Positions 4,666 through 56,818 of a stretch of DNA of 64,000 bases are shown in pieces. The notes beneath the pieces were generated by a model that was not told where the DNA came from, did not search any database, and worked only from the letters and a program-made list of their open reading frames with translations. The number at the start of each line of letters is the position of its first letter. The stretch's first letter is position 1. The DNA is taken from sequence record KU686213.1; one strand, 5' to 3'. The position numbers and the translations under genes were made by a program.

Positions 4666-4668
4666 ATC

Positions 4669-4697
4669 TTGCGGGGTCTCCCCTTTCCTGCTATAAT
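4669..4697 (+). promoter_or_regulatory. Sigma70-type promoter of nrdB
   Basis: TTGCGG-N17-TATAAT with extended -10 (TGcTATAAT). Confidence 0.6.
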
Positions 4698-4718
4698 TAA
4701 CACCTCTTGTAGAATCCT

Positions 4719-5873: not shown

Positions 5874-5876
5874 ATA
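5869..5876 (+). promoter_or_regulatory. T4-type late promoter
   Basis: TATAAATA overlapping the nrdB stop codon. Confidence 0.55.
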
Positions 5877-5879
5877 CAG

Positions 5880-5902
5880 GCTCCCTTAGGGGAGCTTTTT
5901 TT
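5880..5902 (+). terminator. Intrinsic terminator after nrdB
   Basis: gctccc-ttag-gggagc followed by T7. Confidence 0.85.
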
Positions 5903-5938
5903 ATGTCTAAATAGTTTTATAAAGTATTCATTAAAATA

Positions 5939-6382
5939 ATGTCTAGGGAAGAACTTATTGAATTGGCACTACAAGGTTCTGTAATTGCAGAGCAAATCGA
6001 AGAATCTGCAGACATTTACATCGATATTGCAGAGCATCTACTAGCATCTGGTCACGCATCTACAATCGGAGAGATTGACGTAATCCTTAGGGGAATGACT
6101 GTTGAGTCTGCTTCTGGTATTTTGGATGCCGTAGAGGGCACTCGGACGCTCTCTGAGGGGCACAAAAAGATTGCTGCTGGATTGGAAGCTGACCCAGAGG
6201 GATATATGGTCCTGCGCCAGATAGCCACCGCAGAGAACGCTTGCCTACGCATCAAGACTTACATTGGTGGAGACAAGATGCTCCAACTACCAGCGTGGGT
6301 TCAGGCTAAAATGTCTATCGCAGCTGCTGACCTAGATACTATTGCTGATTACTTACTATCAGATACAGAAGCTACTGAGTGA
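5939..6382 (+). CDS. Hypothetical late protein
   Basis: 147 aa. CTAAATA at 5907-5913 upstream. C-terminal LPAWVQAKMSIAAADLDTIADYL resembles a motif common in T4-like hypothetical proteins. Confidence 0.65.
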   Translation: MSREELIELALQGSVIAEQIEESADIYIDIAEHLLASGHASTIGEIDVILRGMTVESASGILDAVEGTRTLSEGHKKIAAGLEADPEGYMVLRQIATAENACLRIKTYIGGDKMLQLPAWVQAKMSIAAADLDTIADYLLSDTEATE

Positions 6383-6388
6383 TTTATT

Positions 6389-6832
6389 ATGAGCACTGTT
6401 ATTGCTGAAAACTTTATAACACCTAATGGAACAGGACTAGTCCCTATAGGTACTGTTATTATGTACTATGGTGCTACTGCTCCCACTGGGTACTTGGAAT
6501 GTGATGGACAGTCTACAGCTGCCTATGAGGATTTATTAGCACTAATTGGTCCCAACACCCCAGACCTTCGCGGTGAATTCGTAAGAGGTTGGGATAACGG
6601 TAGAGGTGTTGATACTGGTCGTGCTTTAGGTAGTACTCAAGATGATGAGTTTAAAGAACATCAACATACGATTGATGGATATCTTCTCCAAGATGGAGCG
6701 AACTATTCTCAAGCAAAAATCATAGCTGATGACGATAGAACTGATAGTGCTATAAGCAAAACCACTAATAATGAAGGTGGGACCGAGACTCGCCCACGTA
6801 ACGTAGCTCTGATGTACTGTATTAAGCATTGA
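6389..6832 (+). CDS. Stand-alone phage tail-collar domain protein
   Basis: PIGTVIMYYGATAPTGYLECDG...PDLRGEFVRGWDNGRGVD...ETRPRNVALMYCIK is the classic tail-collar signature. Confidence 0.85.
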   Translation: MSTVIAENFITPNGTGLVPIGTVIMYYGATAPTGYLECDGQSTAAYEDLLALIGPNTPDLRGEFVRGWDNGRGVDTGRALGSTQDDEFKEHQHTIDGYLLQDGANYSQAKIIADDDRTDSAISKTTNNEGGTETRPRNVALMYCIKH

Positions 6833-6838
6833 TATAGG

Positions 6839-6868
6839 GACCTCTTACTTGACAAGAGGTCTTTTTTT
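6839..6868 (+). terminator. Intrinsic terminator overlapping the next promoter
   Basis: gacctctt-acttgac-aagaggtc followed by T7. Confidence 0.8.
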
Positions 6869-6877
6869 GTGTATAAT
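6849..6877 (+). promoter_or_regulatory. Consensus sigma70 promoter
   Basis: TTGACA (6849-6854), 17 nt, TATAAT (6872-6877). Confidence 0.85.
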
Positions 6878-6913
6878 CAGCCTTGTCGAGGGTGATAAGT
6901 GACTTTAAGTACT
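6878..6913 (+). repeat. 36-nt promoter-leader element, copy 1 (copy 2 at 58085-58120)
   Basis: cagccttgtcgagggtgataagtgactttaagtact; 32/36 identical to 58085-58120. Confidence 0.85.
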
Positions 6914-6940
6914 AAATAAATGATAATAGCTCTCAATAAT

Positions 6941-7096
6941 ATGGCTTTTAGAATATGGCATTCACCTGTAAAGAGTACTGTAGTTGAGACTTGGGAAGAA
7001 GTTTTTGTTTATTATCAGGTTCAACTAGCTACTGTAGGACATCAGCCAGATTATTGGGAAGAGATTTCAGAAGAAGAATATATAAAGAAGCGGTAA
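6941..7096 (+). CDS. Small hypothetical protein (51 aa), not in the ORF track
   Basis: Hand translation MAFRIWHSPVKSTVVETWEEVFVYYQVQLATVGHQPDYWEEISEEEYIKKR; fills the gap between the promoter and the next gene. Confidence 0.6.
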   Translation: MAFRIWHSPVKSTVVETWEEVFVYYQVQLATVGHQPDYWEEISEEEYIKKR

Positions 7097-7105
7097 ACCA
7101 CTTCA

Positions 7106-7534
7106 ATGGTAGATTACGAGAATCCCTGGATGTATAAAGGGAGACCTTTTACTACCGAAAAGATAAAAGATTATTATGGGTTCTTATACCTTATTGAGAA
7201 TAAGCTCACTGGTAGAAAATACATTGGACGCAAGTACTTTGTGCAGAAGAGAAAACCGAAAGGTGGTAAGAGAAGAGTAACTTCTGAAAGTGATTGGAAA
7301 AAATATTATGGTTCTAACGACCAGTTAAAAGCTGATGCGAAGGAGTTTGGTAAAGAGAATTTTAGTAGAAAGATATTATCTCTACACGAAACTGTAGGCA
7401 AAACTAACTACGCAGAGACAGAAGCACTCTTTAAATACAATGTTTTAAGAGCAAAGTTAAAGGATGGTACTGCTGCATACTATAACGACAACATCCTCGG
7501 TAGGTATTACAGAAGGAACTATTGGGTGGACTAA
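7106..7534 (+). CDS. GIY-YIG endonuclease (T4 endonuclease II/DenA-like)
   Basis: YGFLYLIENKLTGRKYIGRK...WKKYYGS...NYAETEALF pattern. Confidence 0.8.
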   Translation: MVDYENPWMYKGRPFTTEKIKDYYGFLYLIENKLTGRKYIGRKYFVQKRKPKGGKRRVTSESDWKKYYGSNDQLKADAKEFGKENFSRKILSLHETVGKTNYAETEALFKYNVLRAKLKDGTAAYYNDNILGRYYRRNYWVD

Positions 7535-7557
7535 ATAAACCACCTGGTCTTTTTATT

Positions 7558-8265
7558 ATGAAGATTGAACTTAAAAACTTTTTTAAGTATTACAATGATG
7601 GCTTACCCCACCACAAAAATTCTGTTGATAAACTAGCTGAAAAAATTGCTAAATTAGCACCAGAACTTTTGGAAGACGATGCCGAGTGGGTTTCTATCTA
7701 CAGAAATCAATCTGTTGATAACGATGGCGACCAAGAATTAGTATTACCTGTTCTCTACTACCCGCAGACAGACAACTACACACAGCCCGAGAGGACGTGT
7801 AATTCATCCGCTTGTGCTATGGCTTTGGAATACTTCAAGCCAGGTACTCTACACGGTCCTAAAGGCGATGATGAGTATATTAGGGAGGTCTTCCAAGTAG
7901 GAGATACTACCGACCATTGGGTACAGACAGAGATTTTAAGAAATCACGGCATTGAATCTACATTCAAATATGATTTAGATTTTGATGACCTTGATAAAGA
8001 ATTAGAAAACCGTAGACCTGTTGTTATTGGTATCCTCCACAGGGGACCTCTATATGCCCCTTCAGGCGGTCATATGATTGTTGTGATTGGTAGAACCGAG
8101 AAAGGTGACTACATCGTTCACGACCCATATGGAGACCTCTACGATGGATATACAAGCACCGTATATAATGGTAGCTCTGCTGTATACGAAAGAAGAGTAT
8201 TAGAAAAGAGATGGACGTGCGACGGTAGTCGTTCAGGATGGGGTAGAGTTTTTTTTCCACAGTAG
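7558..8265 (+). CDS. C39-like cysteine peptidase (putative cell-wall hydrolase), 235 aa; N-terminal part of a possible frameshift fusion
   Basis: YYPQTDN...TCNSSACAM (catalytic Cys), GHMIVVIG (His), YIVHDPYG (Asp). ATG at 7558 follows CTAAATA at 7531-7537. Confidence 0.8.
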   Translation: MKIELKNFFKYYNDGLPHHKNSVDKLAEKIAKLAPELLEDDAEWVSIYRNQSVDNDGDQELVLPVLYYPQTDNYTQPERTCNSSACAMALEYFKPGTLHGPKGDDEYIREVFQVGDTTDHWVQTEILRNHGIESTFKYDLDFDDLDKELENRRPVVIGILHRGPLYAPSGGHMIVVIGRTEKGDYIVHDPYGDLYDGYTSTVYNGSSAVYERRVLEKRWTCDGSRSGWGRVFFPQ

Positions 8266-8295
8266 AACCACCTAACTCTATCTTAGGGGTTCTAC
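8250..8295 (+). promoter_or_regulatory. Candidate -1 programmed ribosomal frameshift signal
   Basis: In-frame heptamer T TTT TTT (8250-8256), 5-nt spacer, then stem gtagaacc-a-cctaa[ctctatc]ttagg-ggttctac (8262-8295). Confidence 0.65.
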
Positions 8296-8774
8296 CAAAT
8301 TCAGGCATACAACTAATCAAAGAATTTGAGGGGCTTCACGTCCTAAGAAACGATGGGTATATTCATGCCTATCCAGACCCACTCTCAGGAAATCTACCAA
8401 TCACTATTGGCTGGGGTTCCACTAGAAAGTTGAATGGTTATCCGTTCAAGCTTGGAGATAAAATAACCAGGTCTGATGCTGATGAATTACTAATACATCA
8501 GTTGAAGGATGAATACTTATCTACTCTAGAAAGAGAAGTACCTTACTGGAGAGAAATGAACGACAACCAGAGAGGAGCTTTGTTGAGCTTCGCATATAAT
8601 TTGGGAGCACATTTCTATGGTAGTGCTGGTTTCAGCACAATAAGCCGTGTTCTTCGGGAAAAGGAGTGGAATAAAGTCCCTGATGCGCTATACTTATACC
8701 GAAACCCAGGCACAAGCGTAGAGGTAGGCTTGACCCGCAGACGCATTGCCGAAGGTGATCTTTGGAAATCTTAA
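8256..8774 (+). CDS. GH24 phage lysozyme domain in the -1 frame, with no start codon before the catalytic motif
   Basis: The frame is open from 8247 to 8774 and reads GIQLIKEFEG...AYPDPLSGNLPITIGWGST...NQRGALLSFAYNLG...GLTRRRIAEG. There is no in-frame ATG/GTG/TTG before the TTG at 8430, which lies after the catalytic residues. Confidence 0.85.
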   Translation, partial: STVEPPNSILGVLPNSGIQLIKEFEGLHVLRNDGYIHAYPDPLSGNLPITIGWGSTRKLNGYPFKLGDKITRSDADELLIHQLKDEYLSTLEREVPYWREMNDNQRGALLSFAYNLGAHFYGSAGFSTISRVLREKEWNKVPDALYLYRNPGTSVEVGLTRRRIAEGDLWKS

Positions 8775-8775
8775 T

Positions 8776-9195
8776 ATGTTATTACCACTGTTTAAAGAAA
8801 GGTTCCAGGGCTTCTGGAACAACCAACGCCAAGCATACAATGACCCTCGGGGGCAGGCATTAGTTCATGTTATCCATGAGTTTGATGTTGATAGGTATCT
8901 ATGTTCTTATAGGTATCGTCGTCAAAAAAATCCATACAGATATTTTGAAGCAACATTACACGATAACGATGGTCAGGTTATTTTAAAAAACCCCGTCCAC
9001 GATATTATGTTTTATGTTCAGAATGGATGTTTTGTAACCAAGTCTAATTTCATTAGCCGTGGTGTGCGTTATATCAATGAAGCCTATCTAGGTGAAAACT
9101 ATTACCACGTCAAAGACCAAGGTTTTGATTTAAAAACTGGGAAGCAAATTTGGGGTCTTGAAGGTGATAACTTCTATGAGTTTGATAGGACTTAA
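8776..9195 (+). CDS. cpeT: CpcT/CpeT-family phycobilin lyase (phage type)
   Basis: FQGFWNNQRQA..DP, QKNPYRY and DQGFD....QIWG...YEFDR match T-type lyase motifs. Confidence 0.75.
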   Translation: MLLPLFKERFQGFWNNQRQAYNDPRGQALVHVIHEFDVDRYLCSYRYRRQKNPYRYFEATLHDNDGQVILKNPVHDIMFYVQNGCFVTKSNFISRGVRYINEAYLGENYYHVKDQGFDLKTGKQIWGLEGDNFYEFDRT

Positions 9196-9270
9196 TCCTC
9201 TCTTCTAAATATTTGATGCAGTCGTCTAAGTTGTTAATTCTTTTGTAATCCATAAGTAGACGCTTATAGT

Positions 9271-9314
9271 ACTGTCACACATCGCATATGATATGCGAGT
9301 TCATATGCTATTAT
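9271..9314 (+). promoter_or_regulatory. Promoter with upstream ACTGTCACAC box and an internal dyad
   Basis: actgtcacac at 9271, perfect inverted repeat tcgcatat-g-atatgcga (9282-9298), extended -10 TGcTATTAT (9306-9314). Confidence 0.5.
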
Positions 9315-9390
9315 TTATATGTTCTTTAATTGAACCGTGGTGTGTTGAGGGGGTTGTTCCCCCATCAAATGTCGAATTCTATTACTTAAC

Positions 9391-10014
9391 TTGAAATTAT
9401 TTACTCAATTTGCAGCAGTTGCAACTTCACTAACTCTGTCTAGCCTAGCTACATCAACTGTCCCTCAGCTACCCGCTATGGCAGTTGAGACCGAAGAAAA
9501 GGCTACTGTTGTTGAAGCTGAACCTGTTGTAGAAACTGAAACCCGGTGGGTTCTCCCTACAGCTAATCATGCAGAGACTAAAGTTCTCAATGCATTACAA
9601 GATCGTGGTATTGAAGACCGAAATGCTCTTGCTACTGTTATGGGAAACATCAAGCAAGAGTCAAAGTTTAACTCTAACATCTGTGAAGGTGGTGCTCGGG
9701 TGTCTTATCATGGTTGCCGTAGTGGTGGTTATGGTCTAATTCAATGGACCAGCATTGGACGCTATCGTGGTTTAGGTAGTCATGCTTATCGTATTGGGAT
9801 GGATCCGTCCACGGTAGATGCTCAAATTTCGTTTCTCTTTACCGAAAGGCAATGGAGAGGAATCGAGCCATCACTCAAAACCAATGGTCAAAGCATTGGT
9901 TTCTATATGGGAAAAACATATTACTGGCTTGGCTGGGGTATACATGGTAATCGTACTACTTACGCTTATCAATATGCTTCAAGACTTACTAGCATTGAGG
10001 TTCCCGTCACATAA
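9391..10014 (+). CDS. Exported phage-tail-lysozyme-like cell-wall hydrolase
   Basis: Signal-peptide-like N-terminus. LQDRGI..RNALATVMGNIKQES and GGYGLIQWT are lysozyme-like superfamily motifs. TTG start. Confidence 0.7.
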   Translation: MKLFTQFAAVATSLTLSSLATSTVPQLPAMAVETEEKATVVEAEPVVETETRWVLPTANHAETKVLNALQDRGIEDRNALATVMGNIKQESKFNSNICEGGARVSYHGCRSGGYGLIQWTSIGRYRGLGSHAYRIGMDPSTVDAQISFLFTERQWRGIEPSLKTNGQSIGFYMGKTYYWLGWGIHGNRTTYAYQYASRLTSIEVPVT

Positions 10015-10036
10015 ATAATGCAGCTTATGCTTTTCT

Positions 10037-10423
10037 ATGGGACCTAAGTATGATGTCGAATTCTATTTTGGAGTTCGACCTGTAAGAACAATTCATTTAT
10101 ACATAACTGCCATCTTTTTGAGCTTGGCAGTTAGTTTAATATCTCATTACACAAAAGCAGATAAAAAAAATCTATGGCTTATTATTGATGAAATAGGAAA
10201 AAAGTATAACATTAGAGTTATTAACAAACTAATCCTTTCTGTTCCTGAACTTTTATCAGGACGTATTGACAATGAGATTGATAATGCCATTGATGAATAC
10301 AATAGTGTGCTAGAATTAGAAGAACCTCATAACACACCAATCTTTACAGAAGAAAGTGAAGGTGAAACTTCTCTTGGTGGTGAAATGAGACTTCGTTCTC
10401 CCTGGAATACAACTGACGATTAA
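10037..10423 (+). CDS. Hypothetical membrane-anchored protein
   Basis: 128 aa with one hydrophobic segment and an acidic C-terminal half. Confidence 0.55.
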   Translation: MGPKYDVEFYFGVRPVRTIHLYITAIFLSLAVSLISHYTKADKKNLWLIIDEIGKKYNIRVINKLILSVPELLSGRIDNEIDNAIDEYNSVLELEEPHNTPIFTEESEGETSLGGEMRLRSPWNTTDD

Positions 10424-10428
10424 TTATT

Positions 10429-10590
10429 ATGTCACGCTACGATCAAATTTTAAAAAATCTAAAAGAAGCAATCTCCAATCCCCATCTATACAATGAGGAA
10501 GAGATTCGTTTTATGAAGACACAGCTTCGCGAACTAACAGAATCAAAGCAACAATTTCTAAGAGAAGATAAGAATGGATTTGGCTCTTAA
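10429..10590 (+). CDS. Small hypothetical protein (53 aa), not in the ORF track
   Basis: Hand translation MSRYDQILKNLKEAISNPHLYNEEEIRFMKTQLRELTESKQQFLREDKNGFGS. Confidence 0.65.
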   Translation: MSRYDQILKNLKEAISNPHLYNEEEIRFMKTQLRELTESKQQFLREDKNGFGS

Positions 10591-11011
10591 AATTGTAGGT
10601 GAAACTTGCCTTACTGAACCATCAATAGTAATTGATGAAATTACTGACGATATTATCAATCTCTCCAACAAAATGAAAGAGAAGATGGTTCAGTGGGATG
10701 GTATAGGATTAGCTGCACCTCAAGTTGGACACAACATCCGCCTTATTGTTATTCGTTTCAGCAGCGGTAAAATACAGGAAATGATTAATCCTAGGATTAG
10801 TTGGACTTCTGAAGTGCGAAAGAAAAGCCAAGAGGGATGCCTAAGCATTCCAGGAGAAACTATTTGGGTTGAAAGACCATCTAAGGTCCGTGTGAAATTT
10901 CAGACTGCCGAAGGTGAGTTTAGATACTGGTGTCTCCATAAGATGGATGCCCGAGTATTCTTACACGAGTATGATCACCTTGAAGGTATTTTAATGACTG
11001 ACCGACTATGA
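10574..11011 (+). CDS. def: Peptide deformylase
   Basis: All three PDF motifs are present: GIGLAAPQVG, EGCLS and HEYDHLEG. Confidence 0.95.
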   Translation: MDLALKIVGETCLTEPSIVIDEITDDIINLSNKMKEKMVQWDGIGLAAPQVGHNIRLIVIRFSSGKIQEMINPRISWTSEVRKKSQEGCLSIPGETIWVERPSKVRVKFQTAEGEFRYWCLHKMDARVFLHEYDHLEGILMTDRL

Positions 11012-12373: not shown

Positions 12374-12425
12374 TCTCGGTAAGACTTTAAAAGAGACCTA
12401 ACCGAGTCCTCTTACTTTTACTCCA

Positions 12426-12650
12426 ATGAAAGCCACATCTTTTTTACGCTACATAGGAAATACACTACTCGTAATAGGACATTTCACACTACTCTGGGGA
12501 AGCACAGAGCCTGCATTAATTATCAAAATCATTGGCGGTGCTCTTATTCTTCCCTTTGCCGTAGGTTTAGCCTTATGGGATGTAGTTGCCTTAGAGTTAG
12601 TCTTTGGTTCTATGGACGTTACTAAATTGTATCAAGTCCTAGTTTCTTAG
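12426..12650 (+). CDS. Small multi-pass membrane protein
   Basis: 74 aa, mostly hydrophobic. Confidence 0.6.
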   Translation: MKATSFLRYIGNTLLVIGHFTLLWGSTEPALIIKIIGGALILPFAVGLALWDVVALELVFGSMDVTKLYQVLVS

Positions 12651-12835
12651 TTCTACAAAAACTAAGTGGTGGAGCCAACTTATAGTTGACCCTTATGCCC
12701 TTGTCGGATGGGCTTTATAAATGCCGACTGGCGCGTCGTAGCAAAGGTTTCTCACTCTTCCTTAAAGAGTGAGTGGTGCGGATGATTTCATCGCATGGTT
12801 TTGCGATTCCATTTAAAGATCGTATGGCGAGCATG
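12640..12835 (+). ncRNA. Structured RNA array of four hairpin-UGGYG units (wcaG/manA-motif-like)
   Basis: Stems cttagtt/aactaag, gtcgg/ccgac, ctcactct/agagtgag and tgcgat/atcgta are each followed immediately by TGGTG or TGGCG (12667, 12729, 12774, 12825). Confidence 0.7.
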
Positions 12836-12862
12836 TTAATATACCCAATCATTTTTTGATGC

Positions 12863-12885
12863 CCCCTTCGGAAAGGGGTTTTTTT
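12863..12885 (+). terminator. Intrinsic terminator closing the RNA array
   Basis: cccctt-cgga-aagggg plus T7; followed by extended -10 TGCTATAAT at 12887-12895. Confidence 0.8.
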
Positions 12886-12916
12886 ATGCTATAATATATA
12901 ATGTATTATTTGTGTA

Positions 12917-13792
12917 ATGGTAATGTATCATGAACGTATGAAGTTACGAAAAGATGCTTATTCTAAAAAGTTAGACAATGTAACATCGAGGTGCTATTTT
13001 GCAAATGGATTTGCAACTAGGATTAAAAATATTGTAAGTTGCCACAGAATTGCAAATAACGTTCAAGTTTATTGGGATGCAAATTGTAAACCATTTTACT
13101 ATAAAAAATTAAATGAATACTTCCCTGATCTAGTGGAAACCGATGAGTATGTCTCAAAGACATGGAGACAAGGATGGAGATTAGCCACTTTTCCTGGAGA
13201 AATTGGGGAAGGTTTTTCAAATAAAGACGCAATTTTTGAAGAGTTTGATAGTCCAATTGTTATCCCATCTCATGGAAAGGGTCGTTGTATTGATTATGAA
13301 TATCATAGAATTCCCCAACCAATTATCGATGACTATCTTAAAATATTCTCTGAGTTGAGAATTAAAGATTCTTTTCTTGAGACTGCGGATAAGTTTGCTA
13401 AGGAAAATTTTAATTCTGAAACTGTTTCTGTGCATATTAGAAATTGGGTTGACTTTGCACCTAGAGGAAAAATGCACACACTATCTCCCTTCATTGACTT
13501 GATGGCAGAGCATCCAACATCAAAGTTTTTTGTTTCTACGGATAGTCCCAATAATATCAAAATCCTAAAAGAAACGTTTGGTGATGATCGCATTATTAGC
13601 TATTGTGGAACAGATCCATCATTTGATGTCTTTATTGATTTACTTCTCTTATCGAAGAATCGTAATTTAATTGGTTCTGTAATGAGCACTTTTAGTGAAG
13701 TTGCTTGGTGGTTAGGTGGAGCTACGGCAAAGGTCAAAATTGCTTATGGTCCCAAGACAATGAAGTATATGTACCCAAAACATCACATTTAA
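12917..13792 (+). CDS. Fucosyltransferase-like GT-B glycosyltransferase
   Basis: SVHIRNW, FFVSTDS and DLLLLSK...IGSVMSTFSEVAWWL resemble GDP-fucose-dependent transferase motifs. Confidence 0.65.
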   Translation: MVMYHERMKLRKDAYSKKLDNVTSRCYFANGFATRIKNIVSCHRIANNVQVYWDANCKPFYYKKLNEYFPDLVETDEYVSKTWRQGWRLATFPGEIGEGFSNKDAIFEEFDSPIVIPSHGKGRCIDYEYHRIPQPIIDDYLKIFSELRIKDSFLETADKFAKENFNSETVSVHIRNWVDFAPRGKMHTLSPFIDLMAEHPTSKFFVSTDSPNNIKILKETFGDDRIISYCGTDPSFDVFIDLLLLSKNRNLIGSVMSTFSEVAWWLGGATAKVKIAYGPKTMKYMYPKHHI

Positions 13793-13832
13793 ACCATTTG
13801 TGCTATAATGTATTTGTAGCAATCCATTTGTA

Positions 13833-14834
13833 ATGAAAGTAGCACTTATTACTGGGATCACAGGGCAAGATGGATCTTACCTAGCTGAACTTCTCCTTCA
13901 GAAAGGATATACAGTTCACGGTATTATCCGTCGTGCTTCTATGATTAACACCCACAGAATTGACCATATCTTTGACCGCATCACTCTCCATTATGGAGAC
14001 CTTACCGATGCTTTGAGTATCGTATCTATTATTAAAACAGTTCAACCAGATGAAATCTATAACCTAGGGGCTCAGAGTCACGTTAAGGTTTCATTTGATC
14101 AACCCGAATACACCGCACAGACCGACGCATTAGGCACTCTAAGGGTGCTGGAAGCCGTCCGTCTTCTTGGTATGGAATCATACGTAAGAATCTACCAAGC
14201 GAGCACCAGTGAGCTTTATGGGCTAGTTCAGGAGACACCCCAGAAAGAAACCACTCCAATGTATCCACGATCCCCTTATGGAGTTGCTAAACTATATGGG
14301 TTCTGGATCATCAAAAACTACAGGGAAAGCTATGACATACATGCCTCTAGCGGTATTCTATTCAATCACGAAAGCTCACGCAGAGGAGAGACGTTCGTCA
14401 CACGCAAGATCGTCCGAGCCTTGTCCCGAATTAGTGTGGGACTCCAAAGTGATCTACAGCTTGGAAACCTCAATGCCCGACGTGACTGGGGACACGCCAA
14501 AGACTACGTAGAGGCTATGTGGTTGATGCTTCAGCAAGAGAAGCCAGATGATTATGTGATCGCAACTGGTGAGCAGTATTCTGTAAAGGACTTTGTTAAT
14601 GCTGCAGCACCATACTTTGGGTTCAATATTGAATGGAGAGGTGAAGGTCTTGATGAGTTTGGATTCTGTCTCAATACTGGTAGAACAGTTGTAAAAGTCA
14701 ATCCTAAATATTTCAGACCCGCAGAAGTAGAAACTCTTCTCGGTGATCCCACTAAAGCAAAGGAAGTTCTTGGATGGACTCCTACTTATACATTTAATGA
14801 ACTAGTTGAAGAGATGGTACTTAATGGACAATAA
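13833..14834 (+). CDS. gmd: GDP-mannose 4,6-dehydratase
   Basis: [74 protein letters not shown] promoter at 13801-13809. Confidence 0.96.
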
Positions 14835-15747
14835 TTCCACAGTTGCAATTTTTGGGTCTGGTGGTCTAGCTGGAGGAGCAATCACCAGACAGTTTATAAA
14901 CAAAAGACATAAACTACTCTTACCTCGCAGTAAAGATTTAGATTTACGAGAACAAGCTGATGTTCGTGCTTGGTTCAAAGCCAATAAAGTTGATTATGTA
15001 ATCCTAGCTGCTGCCCTAGTCGGCGGCATTATGGCTAACAAGACTCGCAAAGCGGAGTTCTTACACGACAATCTAATGATGCAGTGTAATGTAATTGACT
15101 CTGCTTACTATTCAGGTGTTAAGAAGCTCCTATTCCTAGGAACATCTTGCATCTATCCAGCCGGACGCCAACACCCACTAAAAGAAAATGAACTCCTTAC
15201 GGGGGCTCTTGAGCCTACTAACGACGCTTACGCCATCGCAAAGATCGCAGGAATCAAACAATGTGACTTCTACAGGGAGCAATATGGATTTGATGCTATC
15301 TCTATTATGCCTCCTAATCTATATGGTCCTGGAGACAATTTCCACGAGGGATCAGGTCACGTCCTCGCATCGTTGATGAACCGCTTCCACAACGCCAAGG
15401 TGGCTGGTGAAGCCACTGTAGCTTGCTGGGGTGACGGAACACCTATGAGAGAGTTTCTCTTCTCTGAAGACCTAGCAGAAGCCTGTGCGTTCTTTATGGA
15501 TAACTACAGTGACTACGGTCACGTCAATGTTGGAACTGGTGAAGACATCACCATCAAACACCTAGCAGAGAGTATTGCAAAGGTTGTTGGTTTTGAAGGA
15601 GAGATCCTATGGGACACTTCAAAACCAAATGGAAATCCTCGCAAATTACTTGACAGCACTGTGGCTAATGAGTTAGGATGGAAGCCCAAGACCAGTTTTG
15701 AAGATGGTCTACAGAAAACTTACAACTGGTATTTAAACAATGTATGA
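14824..15747 (+). CDS. fcl: GDP-4-keto-6-deoxy-sugar epimerase/reductase (Fcl/WcaG; possibly ColC)
   Basis: [65 protein letters not shown]. Confidence 0.9.
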
Positions 15748-16891
15748 TTGGAAATTAATGGATGATACGGTCACACTTCGTGATCGTATGAAGATGGCTA
15801 AGTTTGTTCTAACTACTAGCCGACTAACACAAGGACCACAAGTTCGTAAATTTGAGGAGCATTGGAGTGACTGGCTTGGAGTTAAACATTCTCTTTTTGT
15901 TAGTAGTGGTAGTACTGCCAACAGTCTTTTGGTATCTGCTTGGAAAGATCTAAATGATATTCCAGATGGTGCAAAGGTTATTGTTCCTGCCTGCACTTGG
16001 GTGACTAACATTGCACCAATCATTCAAAACAATCTAACCCCAGTATTTTGTGATATCAATCTAAAAGACTTTAGCTTTGATATTAGTTCTCTACAGACTA
16101 TTGCTTGTGATCATAAAGATATTCGGGCAATCTTCGTCACACACCTACTAGGTTTCCCTGCACGGGTAGAGGAGTTTCATAAGATCTTCCCTAACGCAGA
16201 CATCCTAGAAGACGTTTGTGAGAGCCACGGTGCCGTTATTGAAGGTGGGACTATGGCTGGTACATATGATGTAGGAGGGACATTCAGCTTCTACTTTGGT
16301 CATCATATGACTACTGTTGAGGGTGGTATGGTATCCACTAACAATAGTGATATGTATGACTTGATGCGTATGAAGCGCTCTCACGGTTTATCTCGTGAGT
16401 CGGTTCATTCTAAAGAGTATGCGAAGATGTATCCCGAGATCAATCCACAGTTCCTCTTTATGACTGATGGTTATAACTTCCGTAATAATGAGATTGGTGC
16501 TGTATTGGGTCAGTCTCAACTAAAGCGTTTGGATAATATGATCGTCAAGCGTAATGATAATTATAAGACATACTTCGAGATTGTATCTCTATACTCCCAT
16601 CTATTCCATGTTCCTGCTTACATTCCAAATCGTATTAGTAGCTTCTGCTTCCCTCTAATCTCTAGGGACAAAGCAACTCATCTAAGACTACAGGAGTTGT
16701 TGACTGAGTATCGTGTAGAGTATCGCCCAGTTGTAGGTGGAAACTTACTCAAGCAGCCTTTCTTATCTGCTTATCACGCAGACTGCCCTAACGCAGACAT
16801 CCTCCACGACCGTGGATTGTATGTTGGAAACAGTCACTTTGTTGGTATAAGCCACTTACTAATGCTTGAAGAAATTTTGGAGCAACTTTGA
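15740..16891 (+). CDS. DegT/DnrJ-family PLP enzyme with His in place of the catalytic Lys (ColD-type 3-dehydratase)
   Basis: VSSGSTAN, ILEDVCESHGA, TFSFYFGHHMTTVEGG (His at the Schiff-base Lys position), GYNFR; 383 aa. Confidence 0.8.
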   Translation: MYDWKLMDDTVTLRDRMKMAKFVLTTSRLTQGPQVRKFEEHWSDWLGVKHSLFVSSGSTANSLLVSAWKDLNDIPDGAKVIVPACTWVTNIAPIIQNNLTPVFCDINLKDFSFDISSLQTIACDHKDIRAIFVTHLLGFPARVEEFHKIFPNADILEDVCESHGAVIEGGTMAGTYDVGGTFSFYFGHHMTTVEGGMVSTNNSDMYDLMRMKRSHGLSRESVHSKEYAKMYPEINPQFLFMTDGYNFRNNEIGAVLGQSQLKRLDNMIVKRNDNYKTYFEIVSLYSHLFHVPAYIPNRISSFCFPLISRDKATHLRLQELLTEYRVEYRPVVGGNLLKQPFLSAYHADCPNADILHDRGLYVGNSHFVGISHLLMLEEILEQL

Positions 16892-16892
16892 T

Positions 16893-17687
16893 ATGACTAT
16901 TTCTTTTAATTATTTGGGTAACCTGGGACACTTGGGAAACCAAATGTTTCAGTATGCCGCATTGATGGGTCTTAGCTCCAAGTATAATAGAACCTTTTGT
17001 ATTCCACATCCCGATACATTTTCAACTGCGAGTTATCAAGAAAATAGAAGCAGTATCTATAGCGCCTTTGATATCAAACCTCCACATGTTGGGATGAGTA
17101 AATTCAACCCAGTTTCAGAGGCACACTTTCATTTTGATAACAACTTATTTGAGAACCTTCCACCCCAAGATATTGATCTTCGTGGATACTTTCAATGTGA
17201 AAAGTGGTTTAAGCATATTGAAGATGATGTGAGAAAGGCATTCACATTCAAGCCCGAGTATATGGAAGTAGCTCAGTTGATGCGAGATCAGTTAGATGGT
17301 GAAGTAATTTCTCTTCATATTAGAAGAACTGATTATATTACCAACCCAAATCATTATTGTATGCATATGGGTTACTATTTGAAAGCATTAAAAGTTATGC
17401 CTTCTGAGCCAAAGGTAATCATTTTTAGTGATGATACTGAATGGGCAATGGATCAGAAAGAGTTTCCTGATGATAGGTTCCTTGTATCCGAGACAAATTG
17501 TCCATACACAGATATGGCTCTGATGACTTTATGCGACTACCACATCAATGCAAACAGCTCCTTCTCCTGGTGGGGATCTTGGCTATCTAACAGCAAGAAA
17601 GTAACAGCTCCAAGTGATTGGTTTTCTGGTCCACTAACTAGTAATAACTTATCTGATATTTATTGTGATGGATGGGAAGTAATCTAA
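16893..17687 (+). CDS. GT11 alpha-1,2-fucosyl/colitosyltransferase family
   Basis: GHLGNQMFQYA, GYFQCEKWF, HIRRTDY, NSSFSWWG. Confidence 0.9.
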   Translation: MTISFNYLGNLGHLGNQMFQYAALMGLSSKYNRTFCIPHPDTFSTASYQENRSSIYSAFDIKPPHVGMSKFNPVSEAHFHFDNNLFENLPPQDIDLRGYFQCEKWFKHIEDDVRKAFTFKPEYMEVAQLMRDQLDGEVISLHIRRTDYITNPNHYCMHMGYYLKALKVMPSEPKVIIFSDDTEWAMDQKEFPDDRFLVSETNCPYTDMALMTLCDYHINANSSFSWWGSWLSNSKKVTAPSDWFSGPLTSNNLSDIYCDGWEVI

Positions 17688-18457
17688 TGGGAAAAAATTT
17701 AGTATGTCAGATCTTTTTTGATAAAAAATTGATTACTGATTATAAAGTTCATGAAAAAGATCAGACAAGAGGTGAGGTTGTAACATCTAAACATTTAGAT
17801 AATGAGTTGTTTCAACATTCTCAAATACTTGCTAAAAGATACGCAGAGCGTGTAGGTGCGGATTACATCCTATTTGATAAACCACATATCAATTTTTATA
17901 ATCCATCTCAAGAAAGATTTAGATTGATGGAAGAAGACCATTGGGCAGAGACATATGATAATATATTATATGTTGACTGTGATGCGTTTATCTACAACGA
18001 ATGCCCCAATATCTTTGAGGAGTATCCACAAGAAAATTTAAGGATTGCTAGGGATATGAACCCAGCTATTCCTAATCAGGAGAATGTAATTGTTAGTGAG
18101 GTTGGTCTTGATAAAGTGCGCCAATCATATTTCAATGCTGGAATTCTATTGATGCACTCATCCACACTTAGGGAATTAAAAAAGGTCATCAAATATAAGG
18201 AAAGATTTTCTCTCTTACCTTATGGTGATCAGTCCGAGTTAAATTACTGCACATTGAAGTATGACATCCCCCATACAGTAATGGACCAAAGATTCAACTC
18301 ATATGACAGAGATGCATTTATCGGTCATCTATACGGTACGCAAAAGTTTGATGGACTATTCCATAGTGCATATCACCTGAAGAAAGCTAAAGAGCAAGCA
18401 CTAGGTATCAAACCGAAGAAAAAGAAGCTACCATTCACAGTAAAAACTAATTATTAA
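17687..18457 (+). CDS. GT-A glycosyltransferase (GT8-like)
   Basis: DxD motif YVDCDA, YFNAGILL, GDQSELN, HLYG. Confidence 0.7.
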   Translation: MGKNLVCQIFFDKKLITDYKVHEKDQTRGEVVTSKHLDNELFQHSQILAKRYAERVGADYILFDKPHINFYNPSQERFRLMEEDHWAETYDNILYVDCDAFIYNECPNIFEEYPQENLRIARDMNPAIPNQENVIVSEVGLDKVRQSYFNAGILLMHSSTLRELKKVIKYKERFSLLPYGDQSELNYCTLKYDIPHTVMDQRFNSYDRDAFIGHLYGTQKFDGLFHSAYHLKKAKEQALGIKPKKKKLPFTVKTNY

Positions 18458-18461
18458 ACTA

Positions 18462-19031
18462 ATGACTGTTGATGTAAACTATTGGAGTACTTTCTACTCA
18501 TCAAATCACACTCTAGATTCCTCCAACTTCTGTAGGTTTGTATTAGAGTACTTTAAAAATCAGTCTTCACTACGCATCCTAGATGCTGGCTGTGGTAATG
18601 GTAGAGATAGCTATGCCCTATCCAAATTACACATAGTAACTGGTATAGATACTGCCGACTATGTTCCTGAGTCAACAGAGACTTGCTCATTTGAGACTGG
18701 AGATTTCTGCACACATGATAAAGATTCTTACGATATTGTGTATTCTAGATTTACTCTACACTCAATTACAGATGAGCAACAGGTAGAATTCATCAAGTCT
18801 ATTGTAAATGCTGGGACTTTCTTATGCATTGAGTGTAGAAGTGATGGAGACATTGATACTGTAAGGGAGCATGGTGATGACCACTATAGAAACTTTGTAA
18901 GCTTTGTTCGCCTTCAGAGTATATTGTTGGAGAATGGATTTATAGTGCATGTTGCTGAAGAAAGTAGGGGATTTGCACCATACAAAGCAGAAGATCCAGT
19001 TTGTGTACGATTCATTGCGGAGAAAAATTGA
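18462..19031 (+). CDS. Class I SAM-dependent methyltransferase
   Basis: ILDAGCGNGRDS motif I; YDIVYSRFTLHSI. Confidence 0.85.
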   Translation: MTVDVNYWSTFYSSNHTLDSSNFCRFVLEYFKNQSSLRILDAGCGNGRDSYALSKLHIVTGIDTADYVPESTETCSFETGDFCTHDKDSYDIVYSRFTLHSITDEQQVEFIKSIVNAGTFLCIECRSDGDIDTVREHGDDHYRNFVSFVRLQSILLENGFIVHVAEESRGFAPYKAEDPVCVRFIAEKN

Positions 19032-19561
19032 TGGCAGGTTATCCTGAAAAAGCAGAAAAGCTAAACACCACACTACTCTGGACTCTCGATCTTCTTGAGA
19101 CTAGAGGTATTGATAAGTGGTTTGTATCTTATGGTACTTTATTGGGTTTGATTCGTGATGGATCATGTATTGATGGTGATGATGATGTAGACATCTGCAT
19201 TGACAAAGATTGTTGGGATGATGTATATGATCCAATCAAAAAATTGAATAGACTCAATGAGCAGTATGTAAAAGAGAACATTATCATCACCAAAAGAACT
19301 GCGACATACTCACAAGTAGATTTTTATTGCTGTGATGTAAATGAGCAAGGTGACTTCAATGATACATGGGAAGATGTTATTTGGAGTAGATGCTATAATG
19401 AGTCTGACAAAATTCCAACCATTGAGTTTCAGGGAAGACATTTGAATGTTCCTCATAATGCAATTGAAAAACTTTCTAAGCGTTATGGTTCTACTTGGAA
19501 TCAGAGAATCAAAAGAGGAACTGAAGCCGGAGATGGTTATCGTAAAATAAAAGTATTATGA
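19031..19561 (+). CDS. LicD-family nucleotidyltransferase-fold protein
   Basis: YGTLLGLIRDG..I..DDDVDI; C-terminal VP......L...YG..W. Confidence 0.8.
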   Translation: MAGYPEKAEKLNTTLLWTLDLLETRGIDKWFVSYGTLLGLIRDGSCIDGDDDVDICIDKDCWDDVYDPIKKLNRLNEQYVKENIIITKRTATYSQVDFYCCDVNEQGDFNDTWEDVIWSRCYNESDKIPTIEFQGRHLNVPHNAIEKLSKRYGSTWNQRIKRGTEAGDGYRKIKVL

Positions 19562-20376
19562 AAAATGAAGTTATGAGACACGATCTAAAAGATACTACAT
19601 TTATTATACCTCTACGCATTGAGAGTGGAGACAGAATGCGTAATGTAATTACTTCATTATGTTATATACTATCAAACTTTGATACTCATATCATTGTAAA
19701 GGAGGGTGATACATCTTCTATATTTCTTGAGGATGTTCTTCCGCAGGTAAAAGATTTCCTGGAAGTAGATGAGATTCCTAATCTATTACATGTCTTTGAG
19801 GACACGAGTGCTTCTGAGTTCCATAGAACTAGGTATCTTAATGAGATGACTCATATGGCTACAACAAAGGTTGTGGTTAATTATGATTGTGATATCATCC
19901 TTCCCGTGGAGTCCTACATAAAAGCACAGGCAATGATTATTGATGGACCTTCTGATGTGGTCTATCCATATGGATTCGGTAACTATGCTAAAATGGTAAC
20001 CGTAGATGATTCAATTGTCTCTGAATTCCTAACTGAAGGATTCAGTATTAATCTCCTAGAAAAAACTACAAAGCTAAACAATGCTCGTTTTGGTTTCTGT
20101 CAGTTCTTTGATAGAGAGGTTTACATCAGTGGTGGCGGGGAAAACGAAAAGTTCATTGCATATGCTCCTGAAGATGAAGAGAGGGCATTTAGATTTATTA
20201 CTTTGGGATATAAAGTAGATCGTATTGATCAATTTGTATATCACCTAGAGCATTCAAGGACACCCAATTCGTGGTATAATAATCCTCATATGCAGAACAA
20301 TTTTGCCTTATGGGAAGTTTTACAGAAAATGGACAAGCATCAACTAATTGAGCACTACAACTTATACAATGGATAA
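19558..20376 (+). CDS. GT-A glycosyltransferase (GT2/GT7-C-like)
   Basis: TFIIPLRIES..RMRN, NYDCDII, GGENEKFIAYAPEDEER..RF..LG, YHLEH. Confidence 0.75.
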   Translation: MKNEVMRHDLKDTTFIIPLRIESGDRMRNVITSLCYILSNFDTHIIVKEGDTSSIFLEDVLPQVKDFLEVDEIPNLLHVFEDTSASEFHRTRYLNEMTHMATTKVVVNYDCDIILPVESYIKAQAMIIDGPSDVVYPYGFGNYAKMVTVDDSIVSEFLTEGFSINLLEKTTKLNNARFGFCQFFDREVYISGGGENEKFIAYAPEDEERAFRFITLGYKVDRIDQFVYHLEHSRTPNSWYNNPHMQNNFALWEVLQKMDKHQLIEHYNLYNG

Positions 20377-21196
20377 AAACAAAGCAATCGGAAAACTACG
20401 AGGAATCCCTAGGATCTTCTACATAAATCTGGACGACCATACAGAACGTCGTCAGTATATGGAAGACCAGTTTGAATACTGGGGTATTCCTGAGGACAAC
20501 TATACGAGAGTTCCTGCCCACGATGGTAGGGGTGATAATGATTTGGGTGATGTCCTAAAAGGTAAGTATCCAGAGCTAATGACTTCCAGTGAAGTTGGAT
20601 GTACCGTATCACACTTAAAGGCACTTAAGTACTGGGTTGATAACTATCCAGAGGAAGAGTATCTTGTGGTTATGGAAGATGATTGTGACATTTCAACAGC
20701 TGGCTACTGGGGCTTTACATGGAATGATTTTGCGCGTAAAGTACCTTATCACTTTGATGTAATTCAACTTGCCGTCATCAATCCCATTGAGATTAATGTT
20801 AAGCTTCATCTGAGATTCGTCAATGACTTCTCAACTGCCTGCTATATTATCCGTAAGCATCACGCAGAGAAGTTAGTCAAACTTCATTGTCGTGGTGATA
20901 AGTATAAGCTTGACCAGAACGTTAAGCCTCGTGCTGTTGCTGATGACTTAATCTACAACTCTGGTTTATCCTTTGCTATCCCCCTGTTCTTATATAAGAT
21001 TGCTTTGGGTTCTAGCATCCATGATATTCACGTGAATACATTCCACAAAAGTAGTCATGATGGTCTATGGCAGTTCTGGAAAGAACAAGCACCAACCATC
21101 CCAGATTGGTCACAGTTCTTTGAGTATGATCCATACTATGGGACACTTCCACCCAGCCTAGTTGCTAAACAAGCTATCGAAGACCATAATAAATAA
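20369..21196 (+). CDS. GT25-family glycosyltransferase
   Basis: FYINLDDHTERRQYM, EVGCTVSHLKA, VMEDD, STACYII. Confidence 0.8.
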   Translation: MDKNKAIGKLRGIPRIFYINLDDHTERRQYMEDQFEYWGIPEDNYTRVPAHDGRGDNDLGDVLKGKYPELMTSSEVGCTVSHLKALKYWVDNYPEEEYLVVMEDDCDISTAGYWGFTWNDFARKVPYHFDVIQLAVINPIEINVKLHLRFVNDFSTACYIIRKHHAEKLVKLHCRGDKYKLDQNVKPRAVADDLIYNSGLSFAIPLFLYKIALGSSIHDIHVNTFHKSSHDGLWQFWKEQAPTIPDWSQFFEYDPYYGTLPPSLVAKQAIEDHNK

Positions 21197-21234
21197 GGTA
21201 GCAGGAACTAAAAAAATACACTCTTCTTTATATT

Positions 21235-25434
<4,200 letters not shown>

Positions 25435-29190: not shown

Positions 29191-29226
29191 ATATAAATAT
29201 CTCTGAAGAGAAGATTATATCTTACA

Positions 29227-33800: not shown

Positions 33801-33959
33801 AATGCAGCAAAGGATGGTATATTCTACGAAAACGGCACAAATGTTACGCAGAATTATACAATCACTTCAGGCAAAAATGCTATGAGTGCTGGTCCAATCA
33901 CTATTAATACCGGAGTAACCGTAACAGTTCCTACTGGATCTGAGTGGACAGTTGTGTAA
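30825..33959 (+). CDS. Tail-fibre-like protein with a collagen tract and internal repeats
   Basis: TATAAATA at 30787-30794, a G-A-T/G-D-Q tract, repeated FSG.GS.LT.L motifs, and C-terminal [25 protein letters not shown]. Confidence 0.85.
31818..32009 (+). repeat. Exact 96-bp tandem duplication (2 copies, 32 codons each)
   Basis: 31818-31913 equals 31914-32009, encoding [32 protein letters not shown]. Confidence 0.9.
33129..33518 (+). repeat. About 93-bp direct repeat pair (33129-33221 and 33426-33518)
   Basis: Both encode [16 protein letters not shown][GS][11 protein letters not shown][VI]LP; two mismatches seen. Confidence 0.85.
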
Positions 33960-56692: not shown

Positions 56693-56715
56693 AGGAACCT
56701 TCGGGTTCCTTTTTT
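56693..56715 (+). terminator. Intrinsic terminator with UUCG loop
   Basis: aggaacc-ttcg-ggttcct plus T-run. Confidence 0.9.
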
Positions 56716-56810: not shown

Positions 56811-56818
56811 TATAAATA
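56811..56818 (+). promoter_or_regulatory. T4-type late promoter
   Basis: TATAAATA, 74 nt upstream of ATG 56892. Confidence 0.75.

Follow-up and report, generated by a model that had tools for sequence, protein, structure and literature searches.

A cyanophage gene cassette with a putative 3,6-dideoxyhexose branch: probable synthesis of GDP-L-colitose alongside GDP-fucose by a sister of ColD and an Fcl-type reductase

Which sugar does Synechococcus phage S-CAM7 make with the four genes at positions 13833–17687 of a 64,000-nucleotide stretch of its genome? S-CAM7 is a T4-like cyanomyovirus (Kyanoviridae, Mazuvirus), and the whole stretch, called the window here, is 100% identical to KU686213.1 (window 13833 is position 164047 of the record). 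The genes encode a guanosine diphosphate (GDP)-mannose 4,6-dehydratase (Gmd), a short-chain dehydrogenase/reductase (SDR) resembling Fcl, a pyridoxal 5'-phosphate (PLP) enzyme and a family 11 glycosyltransferase (GT11). An earlier interpretation of the bare letters (the sequence-only reading) held that they make and transfer colitose, or fucose plus colitose, rather than an amino sugar. We consider it probable that the cassette is a virus-encoded GDP-6-deoxyhexose set with a 3,6-dideoxyhexose branch, which would yield GDP-L-colitose alongside GDP-fucose; as to the product, "fucose plus colitose" is the version that the evidence favours.

Four contiguous, coupled genes had been predicted, and their open reading frames (ORFs), families and junctions bear this out. 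Gmd (13833–14834, + strand) matches TIGR01472 with 540 bits (cutoff 415) and PF16363 over its full length. The SDR, of the GDP-4-keto-6-deoxymannose 3,5-epimerase/4-reductase (Fcl) type (14824–15747, +), scores 423 bits against NF047922 (cutoff 500). The PLP enzyme, a ColD-like candidate 3-dehydratase of 383 amino acids dependent on PLP or pyridoxamine 5'-phosphate (PMP), is encoded at 15740–16891 (+; PF01041, 192 bits, residues 15–360), and the GT11, a candidate colitosyl or fucosyl transferase, at 16893–17687 (+; PF01531, 84 bits, cutoff 23.9). The three junctions are an 11-nucleotide overlap, an 8-nucleotide overlap and a 1-nucleotide gap. The extent of the block was underestimated: the coupled genes number nine (13833–21196), with a related tenth at 12917–13792. 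GenBank starts the PLP gene at 15758; 15740 is the better start because a conserved W-x-L-M lies upstream of 15758.

The proposal had turned on one segment of the PLP enzyme, FYFGHHMTTVEGG (residues 184–196, translated from 16289–16327), said to carry His in place of the Schiff-base Lys. Alignment to PDB chains confirmed this. The first His of the phage G-H-H (codon 16301–16303, +) sits on His188 of ColD, and the register is fixed by the aligned ColD mutant chains H188N (3b8x), H188K (2r0t) and S187N/H188K (3gr9). Column 188 holds K in 26/26 Lys-type sequences and H in every His-type sequence. Since each of the 67 His-type sequences in the tree set carries this His, and G-H-H with an intact active site recurs in 26/26 phage-type viral homologues of a first sample, this is no chance substitution. 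The G-H-H pattern was likewise matched by 75 of the 80 IMG/VR contigs in a second sample centred on the PLP gene; such viral samples are the best 80 matches of pattern-based scans, and IMG/VR contigs can contain cellular DNA. His for Lys is the hallmark of nucleotide-sugar 3-dehydratases (PMC8987622), as the sequence-only reading had stated.

The phage enzyme further keeps ColD residues D159, S183, H188, R219, N248, R250 and R331; R219 is missing from the groups of Lys-type enzymes and of enzymes like E1, the CDP-sugar 3-dehydrase. For the roles that Asp159, Arg219, Arg331 and the others have in ColD, the support in this analysis is conservation. When single sequences were compared with known structures, ColD was matched over its full length with 174 bits, E1 with 118 and perosamine synthase with 84. 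A family profile, which had taken in a few cellular ColD-like rows, gave 412, 242 and 174 bits, respectively, and no more than 178 for aminotransferases. The enzyme is thus most likely, to judge from these alignments, a His-type nucleotide-sugar 3-dehydratase and not a Lys-type aminotransferase.

To place the enzyme in a tree, we used as anchors ColD, ColC and WbgN of Escherichia coli O55:H7 CB9615, Per and Fcl of O157, and Fcl and WbsJ of fucose O-antigens, together with 80 cellular loci. The colanic-acid genes of CB9615 were the starting point from which the O55 cluster was reached; a search of E. coli with the phage gmd had returned only fucose-type O-antigen clusters and no ColD. ORFs of fetched loci were called from stop to stop with heuristic trimming, and calls of gene presence or absence cover flanks of 5–8 kb. 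Careful searches underlie the PLP tree and a second GT11 tree, quick searches the reductase tree and a first GT11 tree. Supports are quoted as ultrafast bootstrap/Shimodaira–Hasegawa-like approximate likelihood-ratio test (SH-aLRT).

All 67 His-type rows formed one clade (100/97), apart from the Lys-type sequences and with E1-like rows basal, which agrees with the predicted class of the enzyme. Classical ColD is a clade of 26 rows (100/99), and the phage enzyme falls outside it, within a G/A-H-H clade (100/99) that is sister to classical ColD (100/95) and contains the phage-type clade (100/100). Hence, by phylogeny, the PLP enzyme belongs to a sister clade of classical ColD and not to ColD proper; in the phylogeny that the sequence-only reading had called for, its place is thus next to ColD, and apart from Per and E1/RfbH, in the wider sense only.

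At least ~590 IMG/VR stretches encode relatives of the enzyme. A phage-type clade made up exclusively of viruses was ruled out by one genuinely bacterial contig, from a Pyrinomonadaceae metagenome-assembled genome (MAG), in which a C-terminally short, 320-residue phage-type copy (L009:6753–7715) lies among Wza/Wzc-type export genes and a GT2; no gmd or fcl was found in the flanks examined. This bacterial copy inside an otherwise viral clade suggests gene transfer between virus and bacterium.

The nearest cellular kin, which read A-H-H, lie in clusters of another kind, found in a Pelagibacteraceae single-amplified genome and a cyanobacterial MAG (L010:7014–11523 and L013:1393–12133). These encode a SIS-domain isomerase, a GHMP kinase, an Fcl-like SDR, a methyltransferase, a fused thiamine-dependent E1/transketolase, a B12-binding radical SAM enzyme and a flavin adenine dinucleotide (FAD) oxidoreductase, and look like an undescribed pathway to a branched, higher-carbon or C-methylated deoxy sugar. 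We therefore dropped phylogenetic bracketing as an argument for GDP-mannose-type specificity. A 3-dehydratase would suit that pathway as well, but with the cellular context so different the case for GDP-6-deoxymannose as substrate has to rest on the genes around the phage enzyme, and their arrangement makes it a strong one.

Indeed, gmd, the reductase gene and the PLP gene follow one another in the phage, stop codons overlapping start codons, as gmd, colC and colD do in 17 bacterial loci, where the classical ColD arrangement is strict. Among the 74 contigs of the PLP-centred sample with upstream room, Gmd lies beside the PLP gene in 68, and 59 have an Fcl-type reductase as well. Another SDR directly follows the PLP gene in six of nine Gmd-only contigs. 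This Gmd–PLP–SDR variant (L195, L199, L204, L205, L207 and L258; ~3900–7300), whose SDR of ~355–364 residues is ~25% identical to Fcl, may make a different 3,6-dideoxyhexose. The pairing of Gmd and PLP enzyme with differing SDRs implies that a logic of 4,6-dehydratase, 3-dehydratase and reductase recurs with interchangeable reductases.

Phage Gmd shares 63% identity with the Gmd of E. coli O55. Neither manB nor manC occurs in the 64-kb window, which leaves the host as the source of GDP-mannose. The reductase had been taken for a ColC homologue, and here the sequence-only reading failed: the protein shares 48% identity with E. coli Fcl and 39% with ColC, and in a 124-row tree the ColC clade (21 rows, SH-aLRT 100, stem 0.84), found beside classical ColD only, is separate from it. 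The window reductase falls on the Fcl side, within a radiation of 88 viral Fcl rows where cassettes that have the PLP gene are interspersed with cassettes that lack it; despite this placement it misses the NF047922 equivalog cutoff. It keeps Thr107, Ser108, Cys109, Tyr136, Lys140 and His179, residues common to ColC and Fcl that do not discriminate between them. A single origin of PLP-associated reductases was rejected by the approximately unbiased (AU) test (p 4e-7; groups for the AU tests were named after the trees were seen). The S-CAM7 lineage has a long stem (0.56) and 14 private substitutions, including S107T and K65L, at positions otherwise conserved in viral Fcl; convergence on ColC was ruled out, as three trivial residues are shared among these 14. 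Acting on a 3-deoxy substrate, an Fcl would yield 3-deoxy-L-fucose, in other words colitose, so that a single Fcl-type enzyme for both branches would be the simplest arrangement.

What, then, ties the transferase to colitose? The phage GT11 has the HxRRxD donor motif as HIRRTDY (residues 142–148). It shares 27% identity with WbgN and 28% with the fucosyltransferase WbsJ, and the E. coli pair groups together on long branches; assigning the donor by similarity to either was uninformative. The GT11 family does include a colitosyltransferase, WbgN, as had been claimed, and WbgN and human FUT2 each use both GDP-colitose and GDP-fucose (PMC11987014), which means that donor supply decides the sugar transferred. 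Inheritance is more telling. GT11s encoded immediately 3' of the PLP gene make up a single clade (14 rows, 100/97), whose sister clade holds the copies from fucose cassettes lacking the PLP gene and the second GT11 copies of three contigs that have it. The two clades have just two fixed differences, one being His13 of the PLP-linked clade versus Arg of its sister, in the conserved N-terminal G-x-LGNQMFQY motif. The reductases of the 14 contigs cannot form one clade (AU p 2e-102). Because the GT11s are monophyletic and the reductases are not, PLP gene and GT11 together appear as a two-gene plug-in module set in varied gmd–fcl backgrounds, and this co-inheritance hints that the GT11 subtype is linked to colitose.

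Both subtypes stand in tandem after the PLP gene in L142, L149 and L152, the PLP-linked type first and the fucose-cassette type second, as expected if GDP-colitose and GDP-fucose are both used. A second viral lineage with the PLP gene (L123, L143, L148, L150, L167, L170 and L185; ~7000–10900) has a GT10 (FucT_N plus Glyco_transf_10) instead of a GT11 and, also 3' of the PLP gene, a small ORF resembling domains of unknown function and unknown proteins of 240–335 residues. In the closest relatives of S-CAM7 (L089 and L091) the partners are a sulfotransferase, a methyltransferase and a GT61. Two cyanomyovirus-like contigs, L186 (341 kb, ENA) and L187, run from pdf to gmd–fcl–PLP–GT11 and on to a GT6, two sulfotransferases, an SDR, a GT25 and psbA; compared with S-CAM7, they indicate that the transferase set of the island varies widely among relatives.

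What we observed are gene identities and catalytic residues, positions in the trees, synteny and co-inheritance; from these we infer substrate, product, acceptance of the 3-deoxy substrate by the Fcl-type enzyme and acceptor as follows. Phage Gmd would convert host GDP-mannose to GDP-4-keto-6-deoxy-D-mannose by oxidation and dehydration. The His-type PLP/PMP enzyme would build a ketimine at C4, His188 acting as acid/base to expel the 3-hydroxyl, and hydrolysis would release GDP-4-keto-3,6-dideoxy-D-mannose; PMP would be regenerated from glutamate as in ColD, with neither an Fe-S cluster nor a reductase partner. The single Fcl-type SDR would then epimerise and reduce either 4-keto sugar, doing the job of ColC, so that the 3-deoxy intermediate would become GDP-L-colitose and the Gmd product GDP-L-fucose. 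The PLP-linked GT11, possibly joined by the 291-residue GT11-like product of the tenth gene, would transfer these L-sugars to a glycan presumably built with the help of the remaining proteins of the block, namely four that are transferase-like, the methyltransferase and the LicD-like one.

Several observations weigh against this scheme. The phage PLP enzyme shares just 32% identity with ColD. Ser187, present in 26/26 classical ColD rows, is Gly in 15/15 phage-type rows, and N160V, M164H, W217L and S87T fall at invariant or nearly invariant positions of classical ColD. The nearest cellular kin sit in a quite different context of branched or heptose-type sugars. The reductase is, on its tree position, of the Fcl and not the ColC type, and we found no published report of an Fcl accepting a 3-deoxy substrate. 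Of 76 contigs in the PLP-centred sample, only 12 have a GT11 beside the PLP gene. Finally, a ColD homologue turns over at a kcat of 0.17 per s (PMC10440746), and fucose could dominate if Fcl outcompetes so slow a 3-dehydratase.

The alternative that best survives, though we think it unlikely, keeps the 3-dehydratase and changes the end product, to a 3,6-dideoxyhexose formed by C4 reduction without C5 inversion or to one modified further, for example by O-methylation. There is a methyltransferase in the cluster, and sister cassettes have methyl- or sulfotransferases; some viral cassettes replace Fcl beside the PLP enzyme with the unrelated SDR of ~355–364 residues; the S-CAM7-lineage reductase has its 14 private changes, S107T and K65L among them; and 3-dehydratase chemistry in Campylobacter jejuni feeds several end products (PMC10440746). 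However, the sole SDR of the cluster retains the Fcl epimerisation pair Cys109/His179 and the Tyr-Lys pair, so that colitose would be the default 3-deoxy product, and a GT11 or GT10 partner implies a donor like GDP-beta-L-fucose, altered hydroxyl stereochemistry not being tolerated (PMC11987014).

Less probable still is an ordinary GDP-fucose/fucosyltransferase cassette, with the PLP enzyme acting elsewhere or adding little. Cassettes of gmd, fcl and GT11 without the PLP gene are certainly common (52 in the reductase-centred viral sample), the reductase is genuinely of Fcl type, and reductases from cassettes with and without the PLP gene are sometimes near-identical sisters (L153 and L151). 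Such a reading must nevertheless explain why the PLP gene is conserved with its active site intact, why it is translationally coupled between fcl and GT11, and why it travels with a GT11 subtype of its own; moreover, its chemistry uses 4-keto sugars only, and Gmd provides one.

Three further possibilities have very little going for them. The first is an aminotransferase making a perosamine-type GDP-4-amino sugar, which is what the names suggest. The protein belongs to the DegT/DnrJ/EryC1 Pfam family, and RefSeq and PHROGs (phrog_3139) label the gene "aminotransferase", as the sequence-only reading had expected of automated annotation. The NCBI Prokaryotic Genome Annotation Pipeline (PGAP) with RefSeq gives even the characterised ColD of E. 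coli O55:H7 CB9615 (L008:10702–11868) the name "DegT/DnrJ/EryC1/StrS family aminotransferase", and in the same cluster the colitosyltransferase WbgN (L008:18228–19100) is an "alpha-1,2-fucosyltransferase". Against these names stand the replacement of the Schiff-base Lys by His, the clade of His-type enzymes and the lack of any N-acyl- or formyltransferase in the cluster. GDP-perosamine synthase (Per) has N-K at the two columns where the phage enzyme has G-H, so that the preceding residue, too, is Gly and not Per's Asn. Cook et al. reportedly had to introduce S187N and H188K together, in 2009, to turn ColD into an aminotransferase, which also counts against this reading; the 3gr9 chain has N-K at ColD positions 187–188.

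The second, hardly more credible, is an E1/RfbH-type 3-dehydrase working on a CDP-linked sugar in a pathway of the abequose, paratose or tyvelose type. The prediction that annotation would name an aminotransferase holds for RefSeq and PHROGs but not for the GenBank depositors, who already wrote "putative CDP-4-keto-6-deoxy-D-glucose-3-dehydrase"; JGI (KEGG-style) and UniRef names are alike, and RfbH (NF011936) is the best NCBIfam match. The phage enzyme nonetheless fails the equivalog cutoff of that model (176 bits against 423), and falls below ColD itself (263); basal E1-like rows reach 335–398. A 4-Cys [2Fe-2S] motif and dependence on a reductase are features of E1 and SpnQ that ColD does not share (PMC8987622). 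In the phage enzyme the Cys-rich insert of E1 (3bcx) is a gap and the [2Fe-2S] Cys motif is missing, its 383 residues comparing with 388 in ColD and 437 in E1. The cluster encodes no E3 reductase, CDP-glucose 4,6-dehydratase or cytidylyltransferase, and the adjoining dehydratase is a Gmd equivalog.

The third, a GDP-heptose pathway to a 3,6-dideoxyheptose as in C. jejuni capsules, is suggested by classical-clade ColD homologues that act on GDP-6-deoxy-4-keto-heptose (PMC10440746) and by the SIS-domain and GHMP-kinase genes next to the A-H-H sister group, but it is scarcely tenable given a dehydratase that passes the Gmd equivalog cutoff at 63% identity to E. coli Gmd, a cluster with no GmhA/HddA/HddC-type genes, and a bifunctional Fcl-type partner instead of a cupin epimerase and separate reductase. 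The lipopolysaccharide (LPS) of marine Synechococcus reportedly lacks heptose, which we also count against it.

If the cassette does supply colitose beside fucose, where might the sugars go? A scan of the cluster proteins found no membrane segment, flippase, polymerase or priming transferase. Enzymes of the GT25, GT8, GT11 and LicD families elongate the outer core of lipooligosaccharide (LOS) on the cytoplasmic side of the inner membrane. By analogy, the enzyme set would suit modification of host LPS. Chloroviruses and mycobacteriophages glycosylate virion proteins in the cytoplasm, and by that analogy virion proteins would be an acceptor equally possible mechanistically. According to a recent preprint, every replicate of Synechococcus WH7803 acquired resistance to S-CAM7 by mutation of galE, and loss of strain-variable regions was frequent among evolved S-CAM7 lines (bioRxiv 10.64898/2026.10.08.757702). 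Resistance on loss of galE means that a galactose-containing glycan may be the phage's own receptor, and its capping by a phage-made L-sugar is an attractive hypothesis.

A more ambitious reading, possible but on balance doubtful, joins these points: a mobile plug-in of 3-dehydratase and GT11 would add colitose to cyanophage gmd–fcl–GT11 fucosylation, with an ordinary Fcl as colitose synthase, and a soluble LOS-type set would cap a galactose-containing host glycan and so mask the receptor. The soluble enzymes (GT25, GT8-like, GT11 and LicD-like), without flippase or polymerase, would act during infection, and capping would hinder superinfection and keep progeny from being lost to debris and already infected cells.

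The remaining genes of the island are all on the + strand. The protein of 291 residues encoded at 12917–13792, annotated as hypothetical, is a divergent GT11-like protein: it has no Pfam match at E<=0.01, but aligning its family (A3) with GT11 by hhalign gave a probability of 96.7% (E 4.5e-10) over 116 columns that include the HxRR region and the C-terminal SxFS..WW motif. Atlas leads for it are FUT8, NodZ, O-FucT and GT11, and homologues flank gmd in L092, L100 and L105. Its place in a GT11-like superfamily makes it a second candidate GDP-6-deoxyhexose transferase. Downstream of the GT11 come a weakly assigned GT8-like glycosyltransferase (17672–18457; PF01501, E 2e-4, below the cutoff, with homologues in related contigs) and an S-adenosylmethionine-dependent methyltransferase (18462–19031; several Methyltransf Pfam families above cutoff). 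GenBank calls the latter "adenylylsulfate kinase", probably wrongly, since methyltransferase families matched and no kinase model did. There follow a LicD-like protein of a phospho-substituent transferase family (19031–19561; PF04991, 28 bits, cutoff 22.6; NF045866, E 1e-12), a possible GT-A glycosyltransferase of the GT2/Glyco_transf_7C type (19558–20376; PHROG 1721 "galactosyl transferase", E 5e-6; as a lead, Atlas scores of 0.98–0.99 to viral GT2/GT7C clusters) and a GT25 (20459–21196; PF01755, 46 bits, cutoff 24; phrog_2835). Directly 3' of the block's end at 21196 begins a 1399-residue tail fibre gene (21235–25434, +; phrog_28263 over the full length; so annotated in GenBank), the first in a long run of fibre genes.

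In the 40-bp gap 5' of gmd lies an extended -10 promoter-like site, TGCTATAAT (13782–13809, +), a lead with 10/12 matches and TG before the -10 hexamer; it is the sole good site of its kind to lie between genes, and promoter-like sites in the region are not enriched (33 versus 28 +/- 5 in shuffles). A clean terminator-like hairpin, CCCCTT-CGGA-AAGGGG with a T run (12863–12878), stands just 5' of the 291-residue GT11-like gene and may mark the 5' boundary of the island's transcription unit. The T4-type late-promoter motif TATAAATA occurs on the + strand at 29192, 30787, 36932, 39264 and 56811, 27–63 nucleotides 5' of five fibre-type ORFs (starts 29227, 30825, 36965, 39332 and 56892), an extra copy at 56715 preceding that at 56811. 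The window holds 10 matches against 4.3 expected by chance, and a motif scan found none within 12400–21300. Absence of the late motif from the sugar cluster, with the extended -10 site before gmd, weakly suggests that the cluster is not a late structural operon. Contigs from marine RNA libraries match gmd, fcl, the PLP gene and the methyltransferase; this is weak and not proof of expression, since such libraries may contain DNA. Farther into the fibre genes lies an ORF of 4168 residues (39332–51838) with no Pfam match at E<=1e-4, flanked by collagen-repeat fibre-like proteins (29227–30780 and 30825–33959) and by two proteins with a C-terminal Peptidase_S74 intramolecular-chaperone domain (52223–56686 and 56892–58028).

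In our literature search, nothing connected cyanophages to colitose, dideoxy sugars or 3-dehydratases. Earlier work assigned the gmd, fcl and fucosyltransferase genes of cyanophages to modification of the cell wall or LPS (PMC9602691), and a 3-dehydrase label, of the CDP type, was already in GenBank; new here is the viral, modular combination of a ColD-sister enzyme with an Fcl-type reductase. Should colitose be made, viruses would be shown to encode dideoxyhexose biosynthesis, hitherto treated as a speciality of bacterial O-antigens, and the large G/A-H-H sister clade of ColD would gain a function. It would then become possible to correct the names "aminotransferase" and "CDP-...-3-dehydrase" that hundreds of viral and cellular genes now bear, and insertion of the PLP gene and GT11 would be a clean natural example of one added enzyme re-coding a surface glycan, since either donor is accepted by GT11 enzymes. 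The plug-in, if real, would give viruses their first 3,6-dideoxyhexose pathway and add to the classical route to GDP-colitose a second one of another kind. Cyanomyoviruses of the S-CAM7 kind are abundant in the sea, and with S-CAM7 and Synechococcus WH7803 in culture, and lab-evolved deletion lines at hand, the locus offers a testable handle on the role of cyanophage "LPS genes".

Among characterised systems, the colitose pathway of E. coli O55:H7 (Gmd, ColC/WbdJ, ColD/WbdK and WbgN) shares with S-CAM7 the three-step logic, the GT11 partner and a PLP gene that follows the reductase gene, the start codon of one overlapping the stop codon of the other; its ColD, like the phage enzyme, has His188, the equivalents of D159, S183, R219, N248, R250 and R331, and no Fe-S motif. 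S-CAM7 differs in a PLP enzyme that is 32% identical, of the sister clade and G-H-H rather than S-H-H, in an Fcl-type reductase, in having no manB/manC, wzx or wzy, and in being a lytic virus. C. jejuni HS:5 and HS:11 also use a GDP-linked 4,6-dehydratase, a glutamate-dependent C3-dehydratase of the ColD type and a subsequent reduction (PMC10440746), but on a heptose and with a separate cupin epimerase and C4-reductase; their C3-dehydratase, unlike the phage enzyme, is in the classical ColD group, at 62–67% identity to ColD. The E1 of CDP-sugar pathways (RfbH/DdhC) has in common with the phage enzyme His for Lys, PMP chemistry at C4 and C3 deoxygenation (PMC8987622), and is set apart by its 4-Cys [2Fe-2S] insert, its length of ~437 residues, its need for E3 and its CDP sugar. 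Per/RfbE of E. coli O157 resembles the proposed phage enzyme in fold, family, GDP-4-keto-6-deoxymannose substrate and position beside gmd and fcl, and departs from it in having N-K for G-H and in belonging to the Lys-type outgroup. Similar in setting are the cyanophage gmd–fcl–fucosyltransferase cassettes (S-SCSM1, PMC9602691, and many IMG/VR contigs), which share with S-CAM7 Gmd, the viral Fcl radiation, a GT11 of the sister clade and a neighbourhood after peptide deformylase and near glycosyltransferases, but are without the PLP 3-dehydratase and the PLP-linked GT11 subtype. Set beside them, the S-CAM7 cassette looks like a fucose cassette into which a two-gene module has been inserted.

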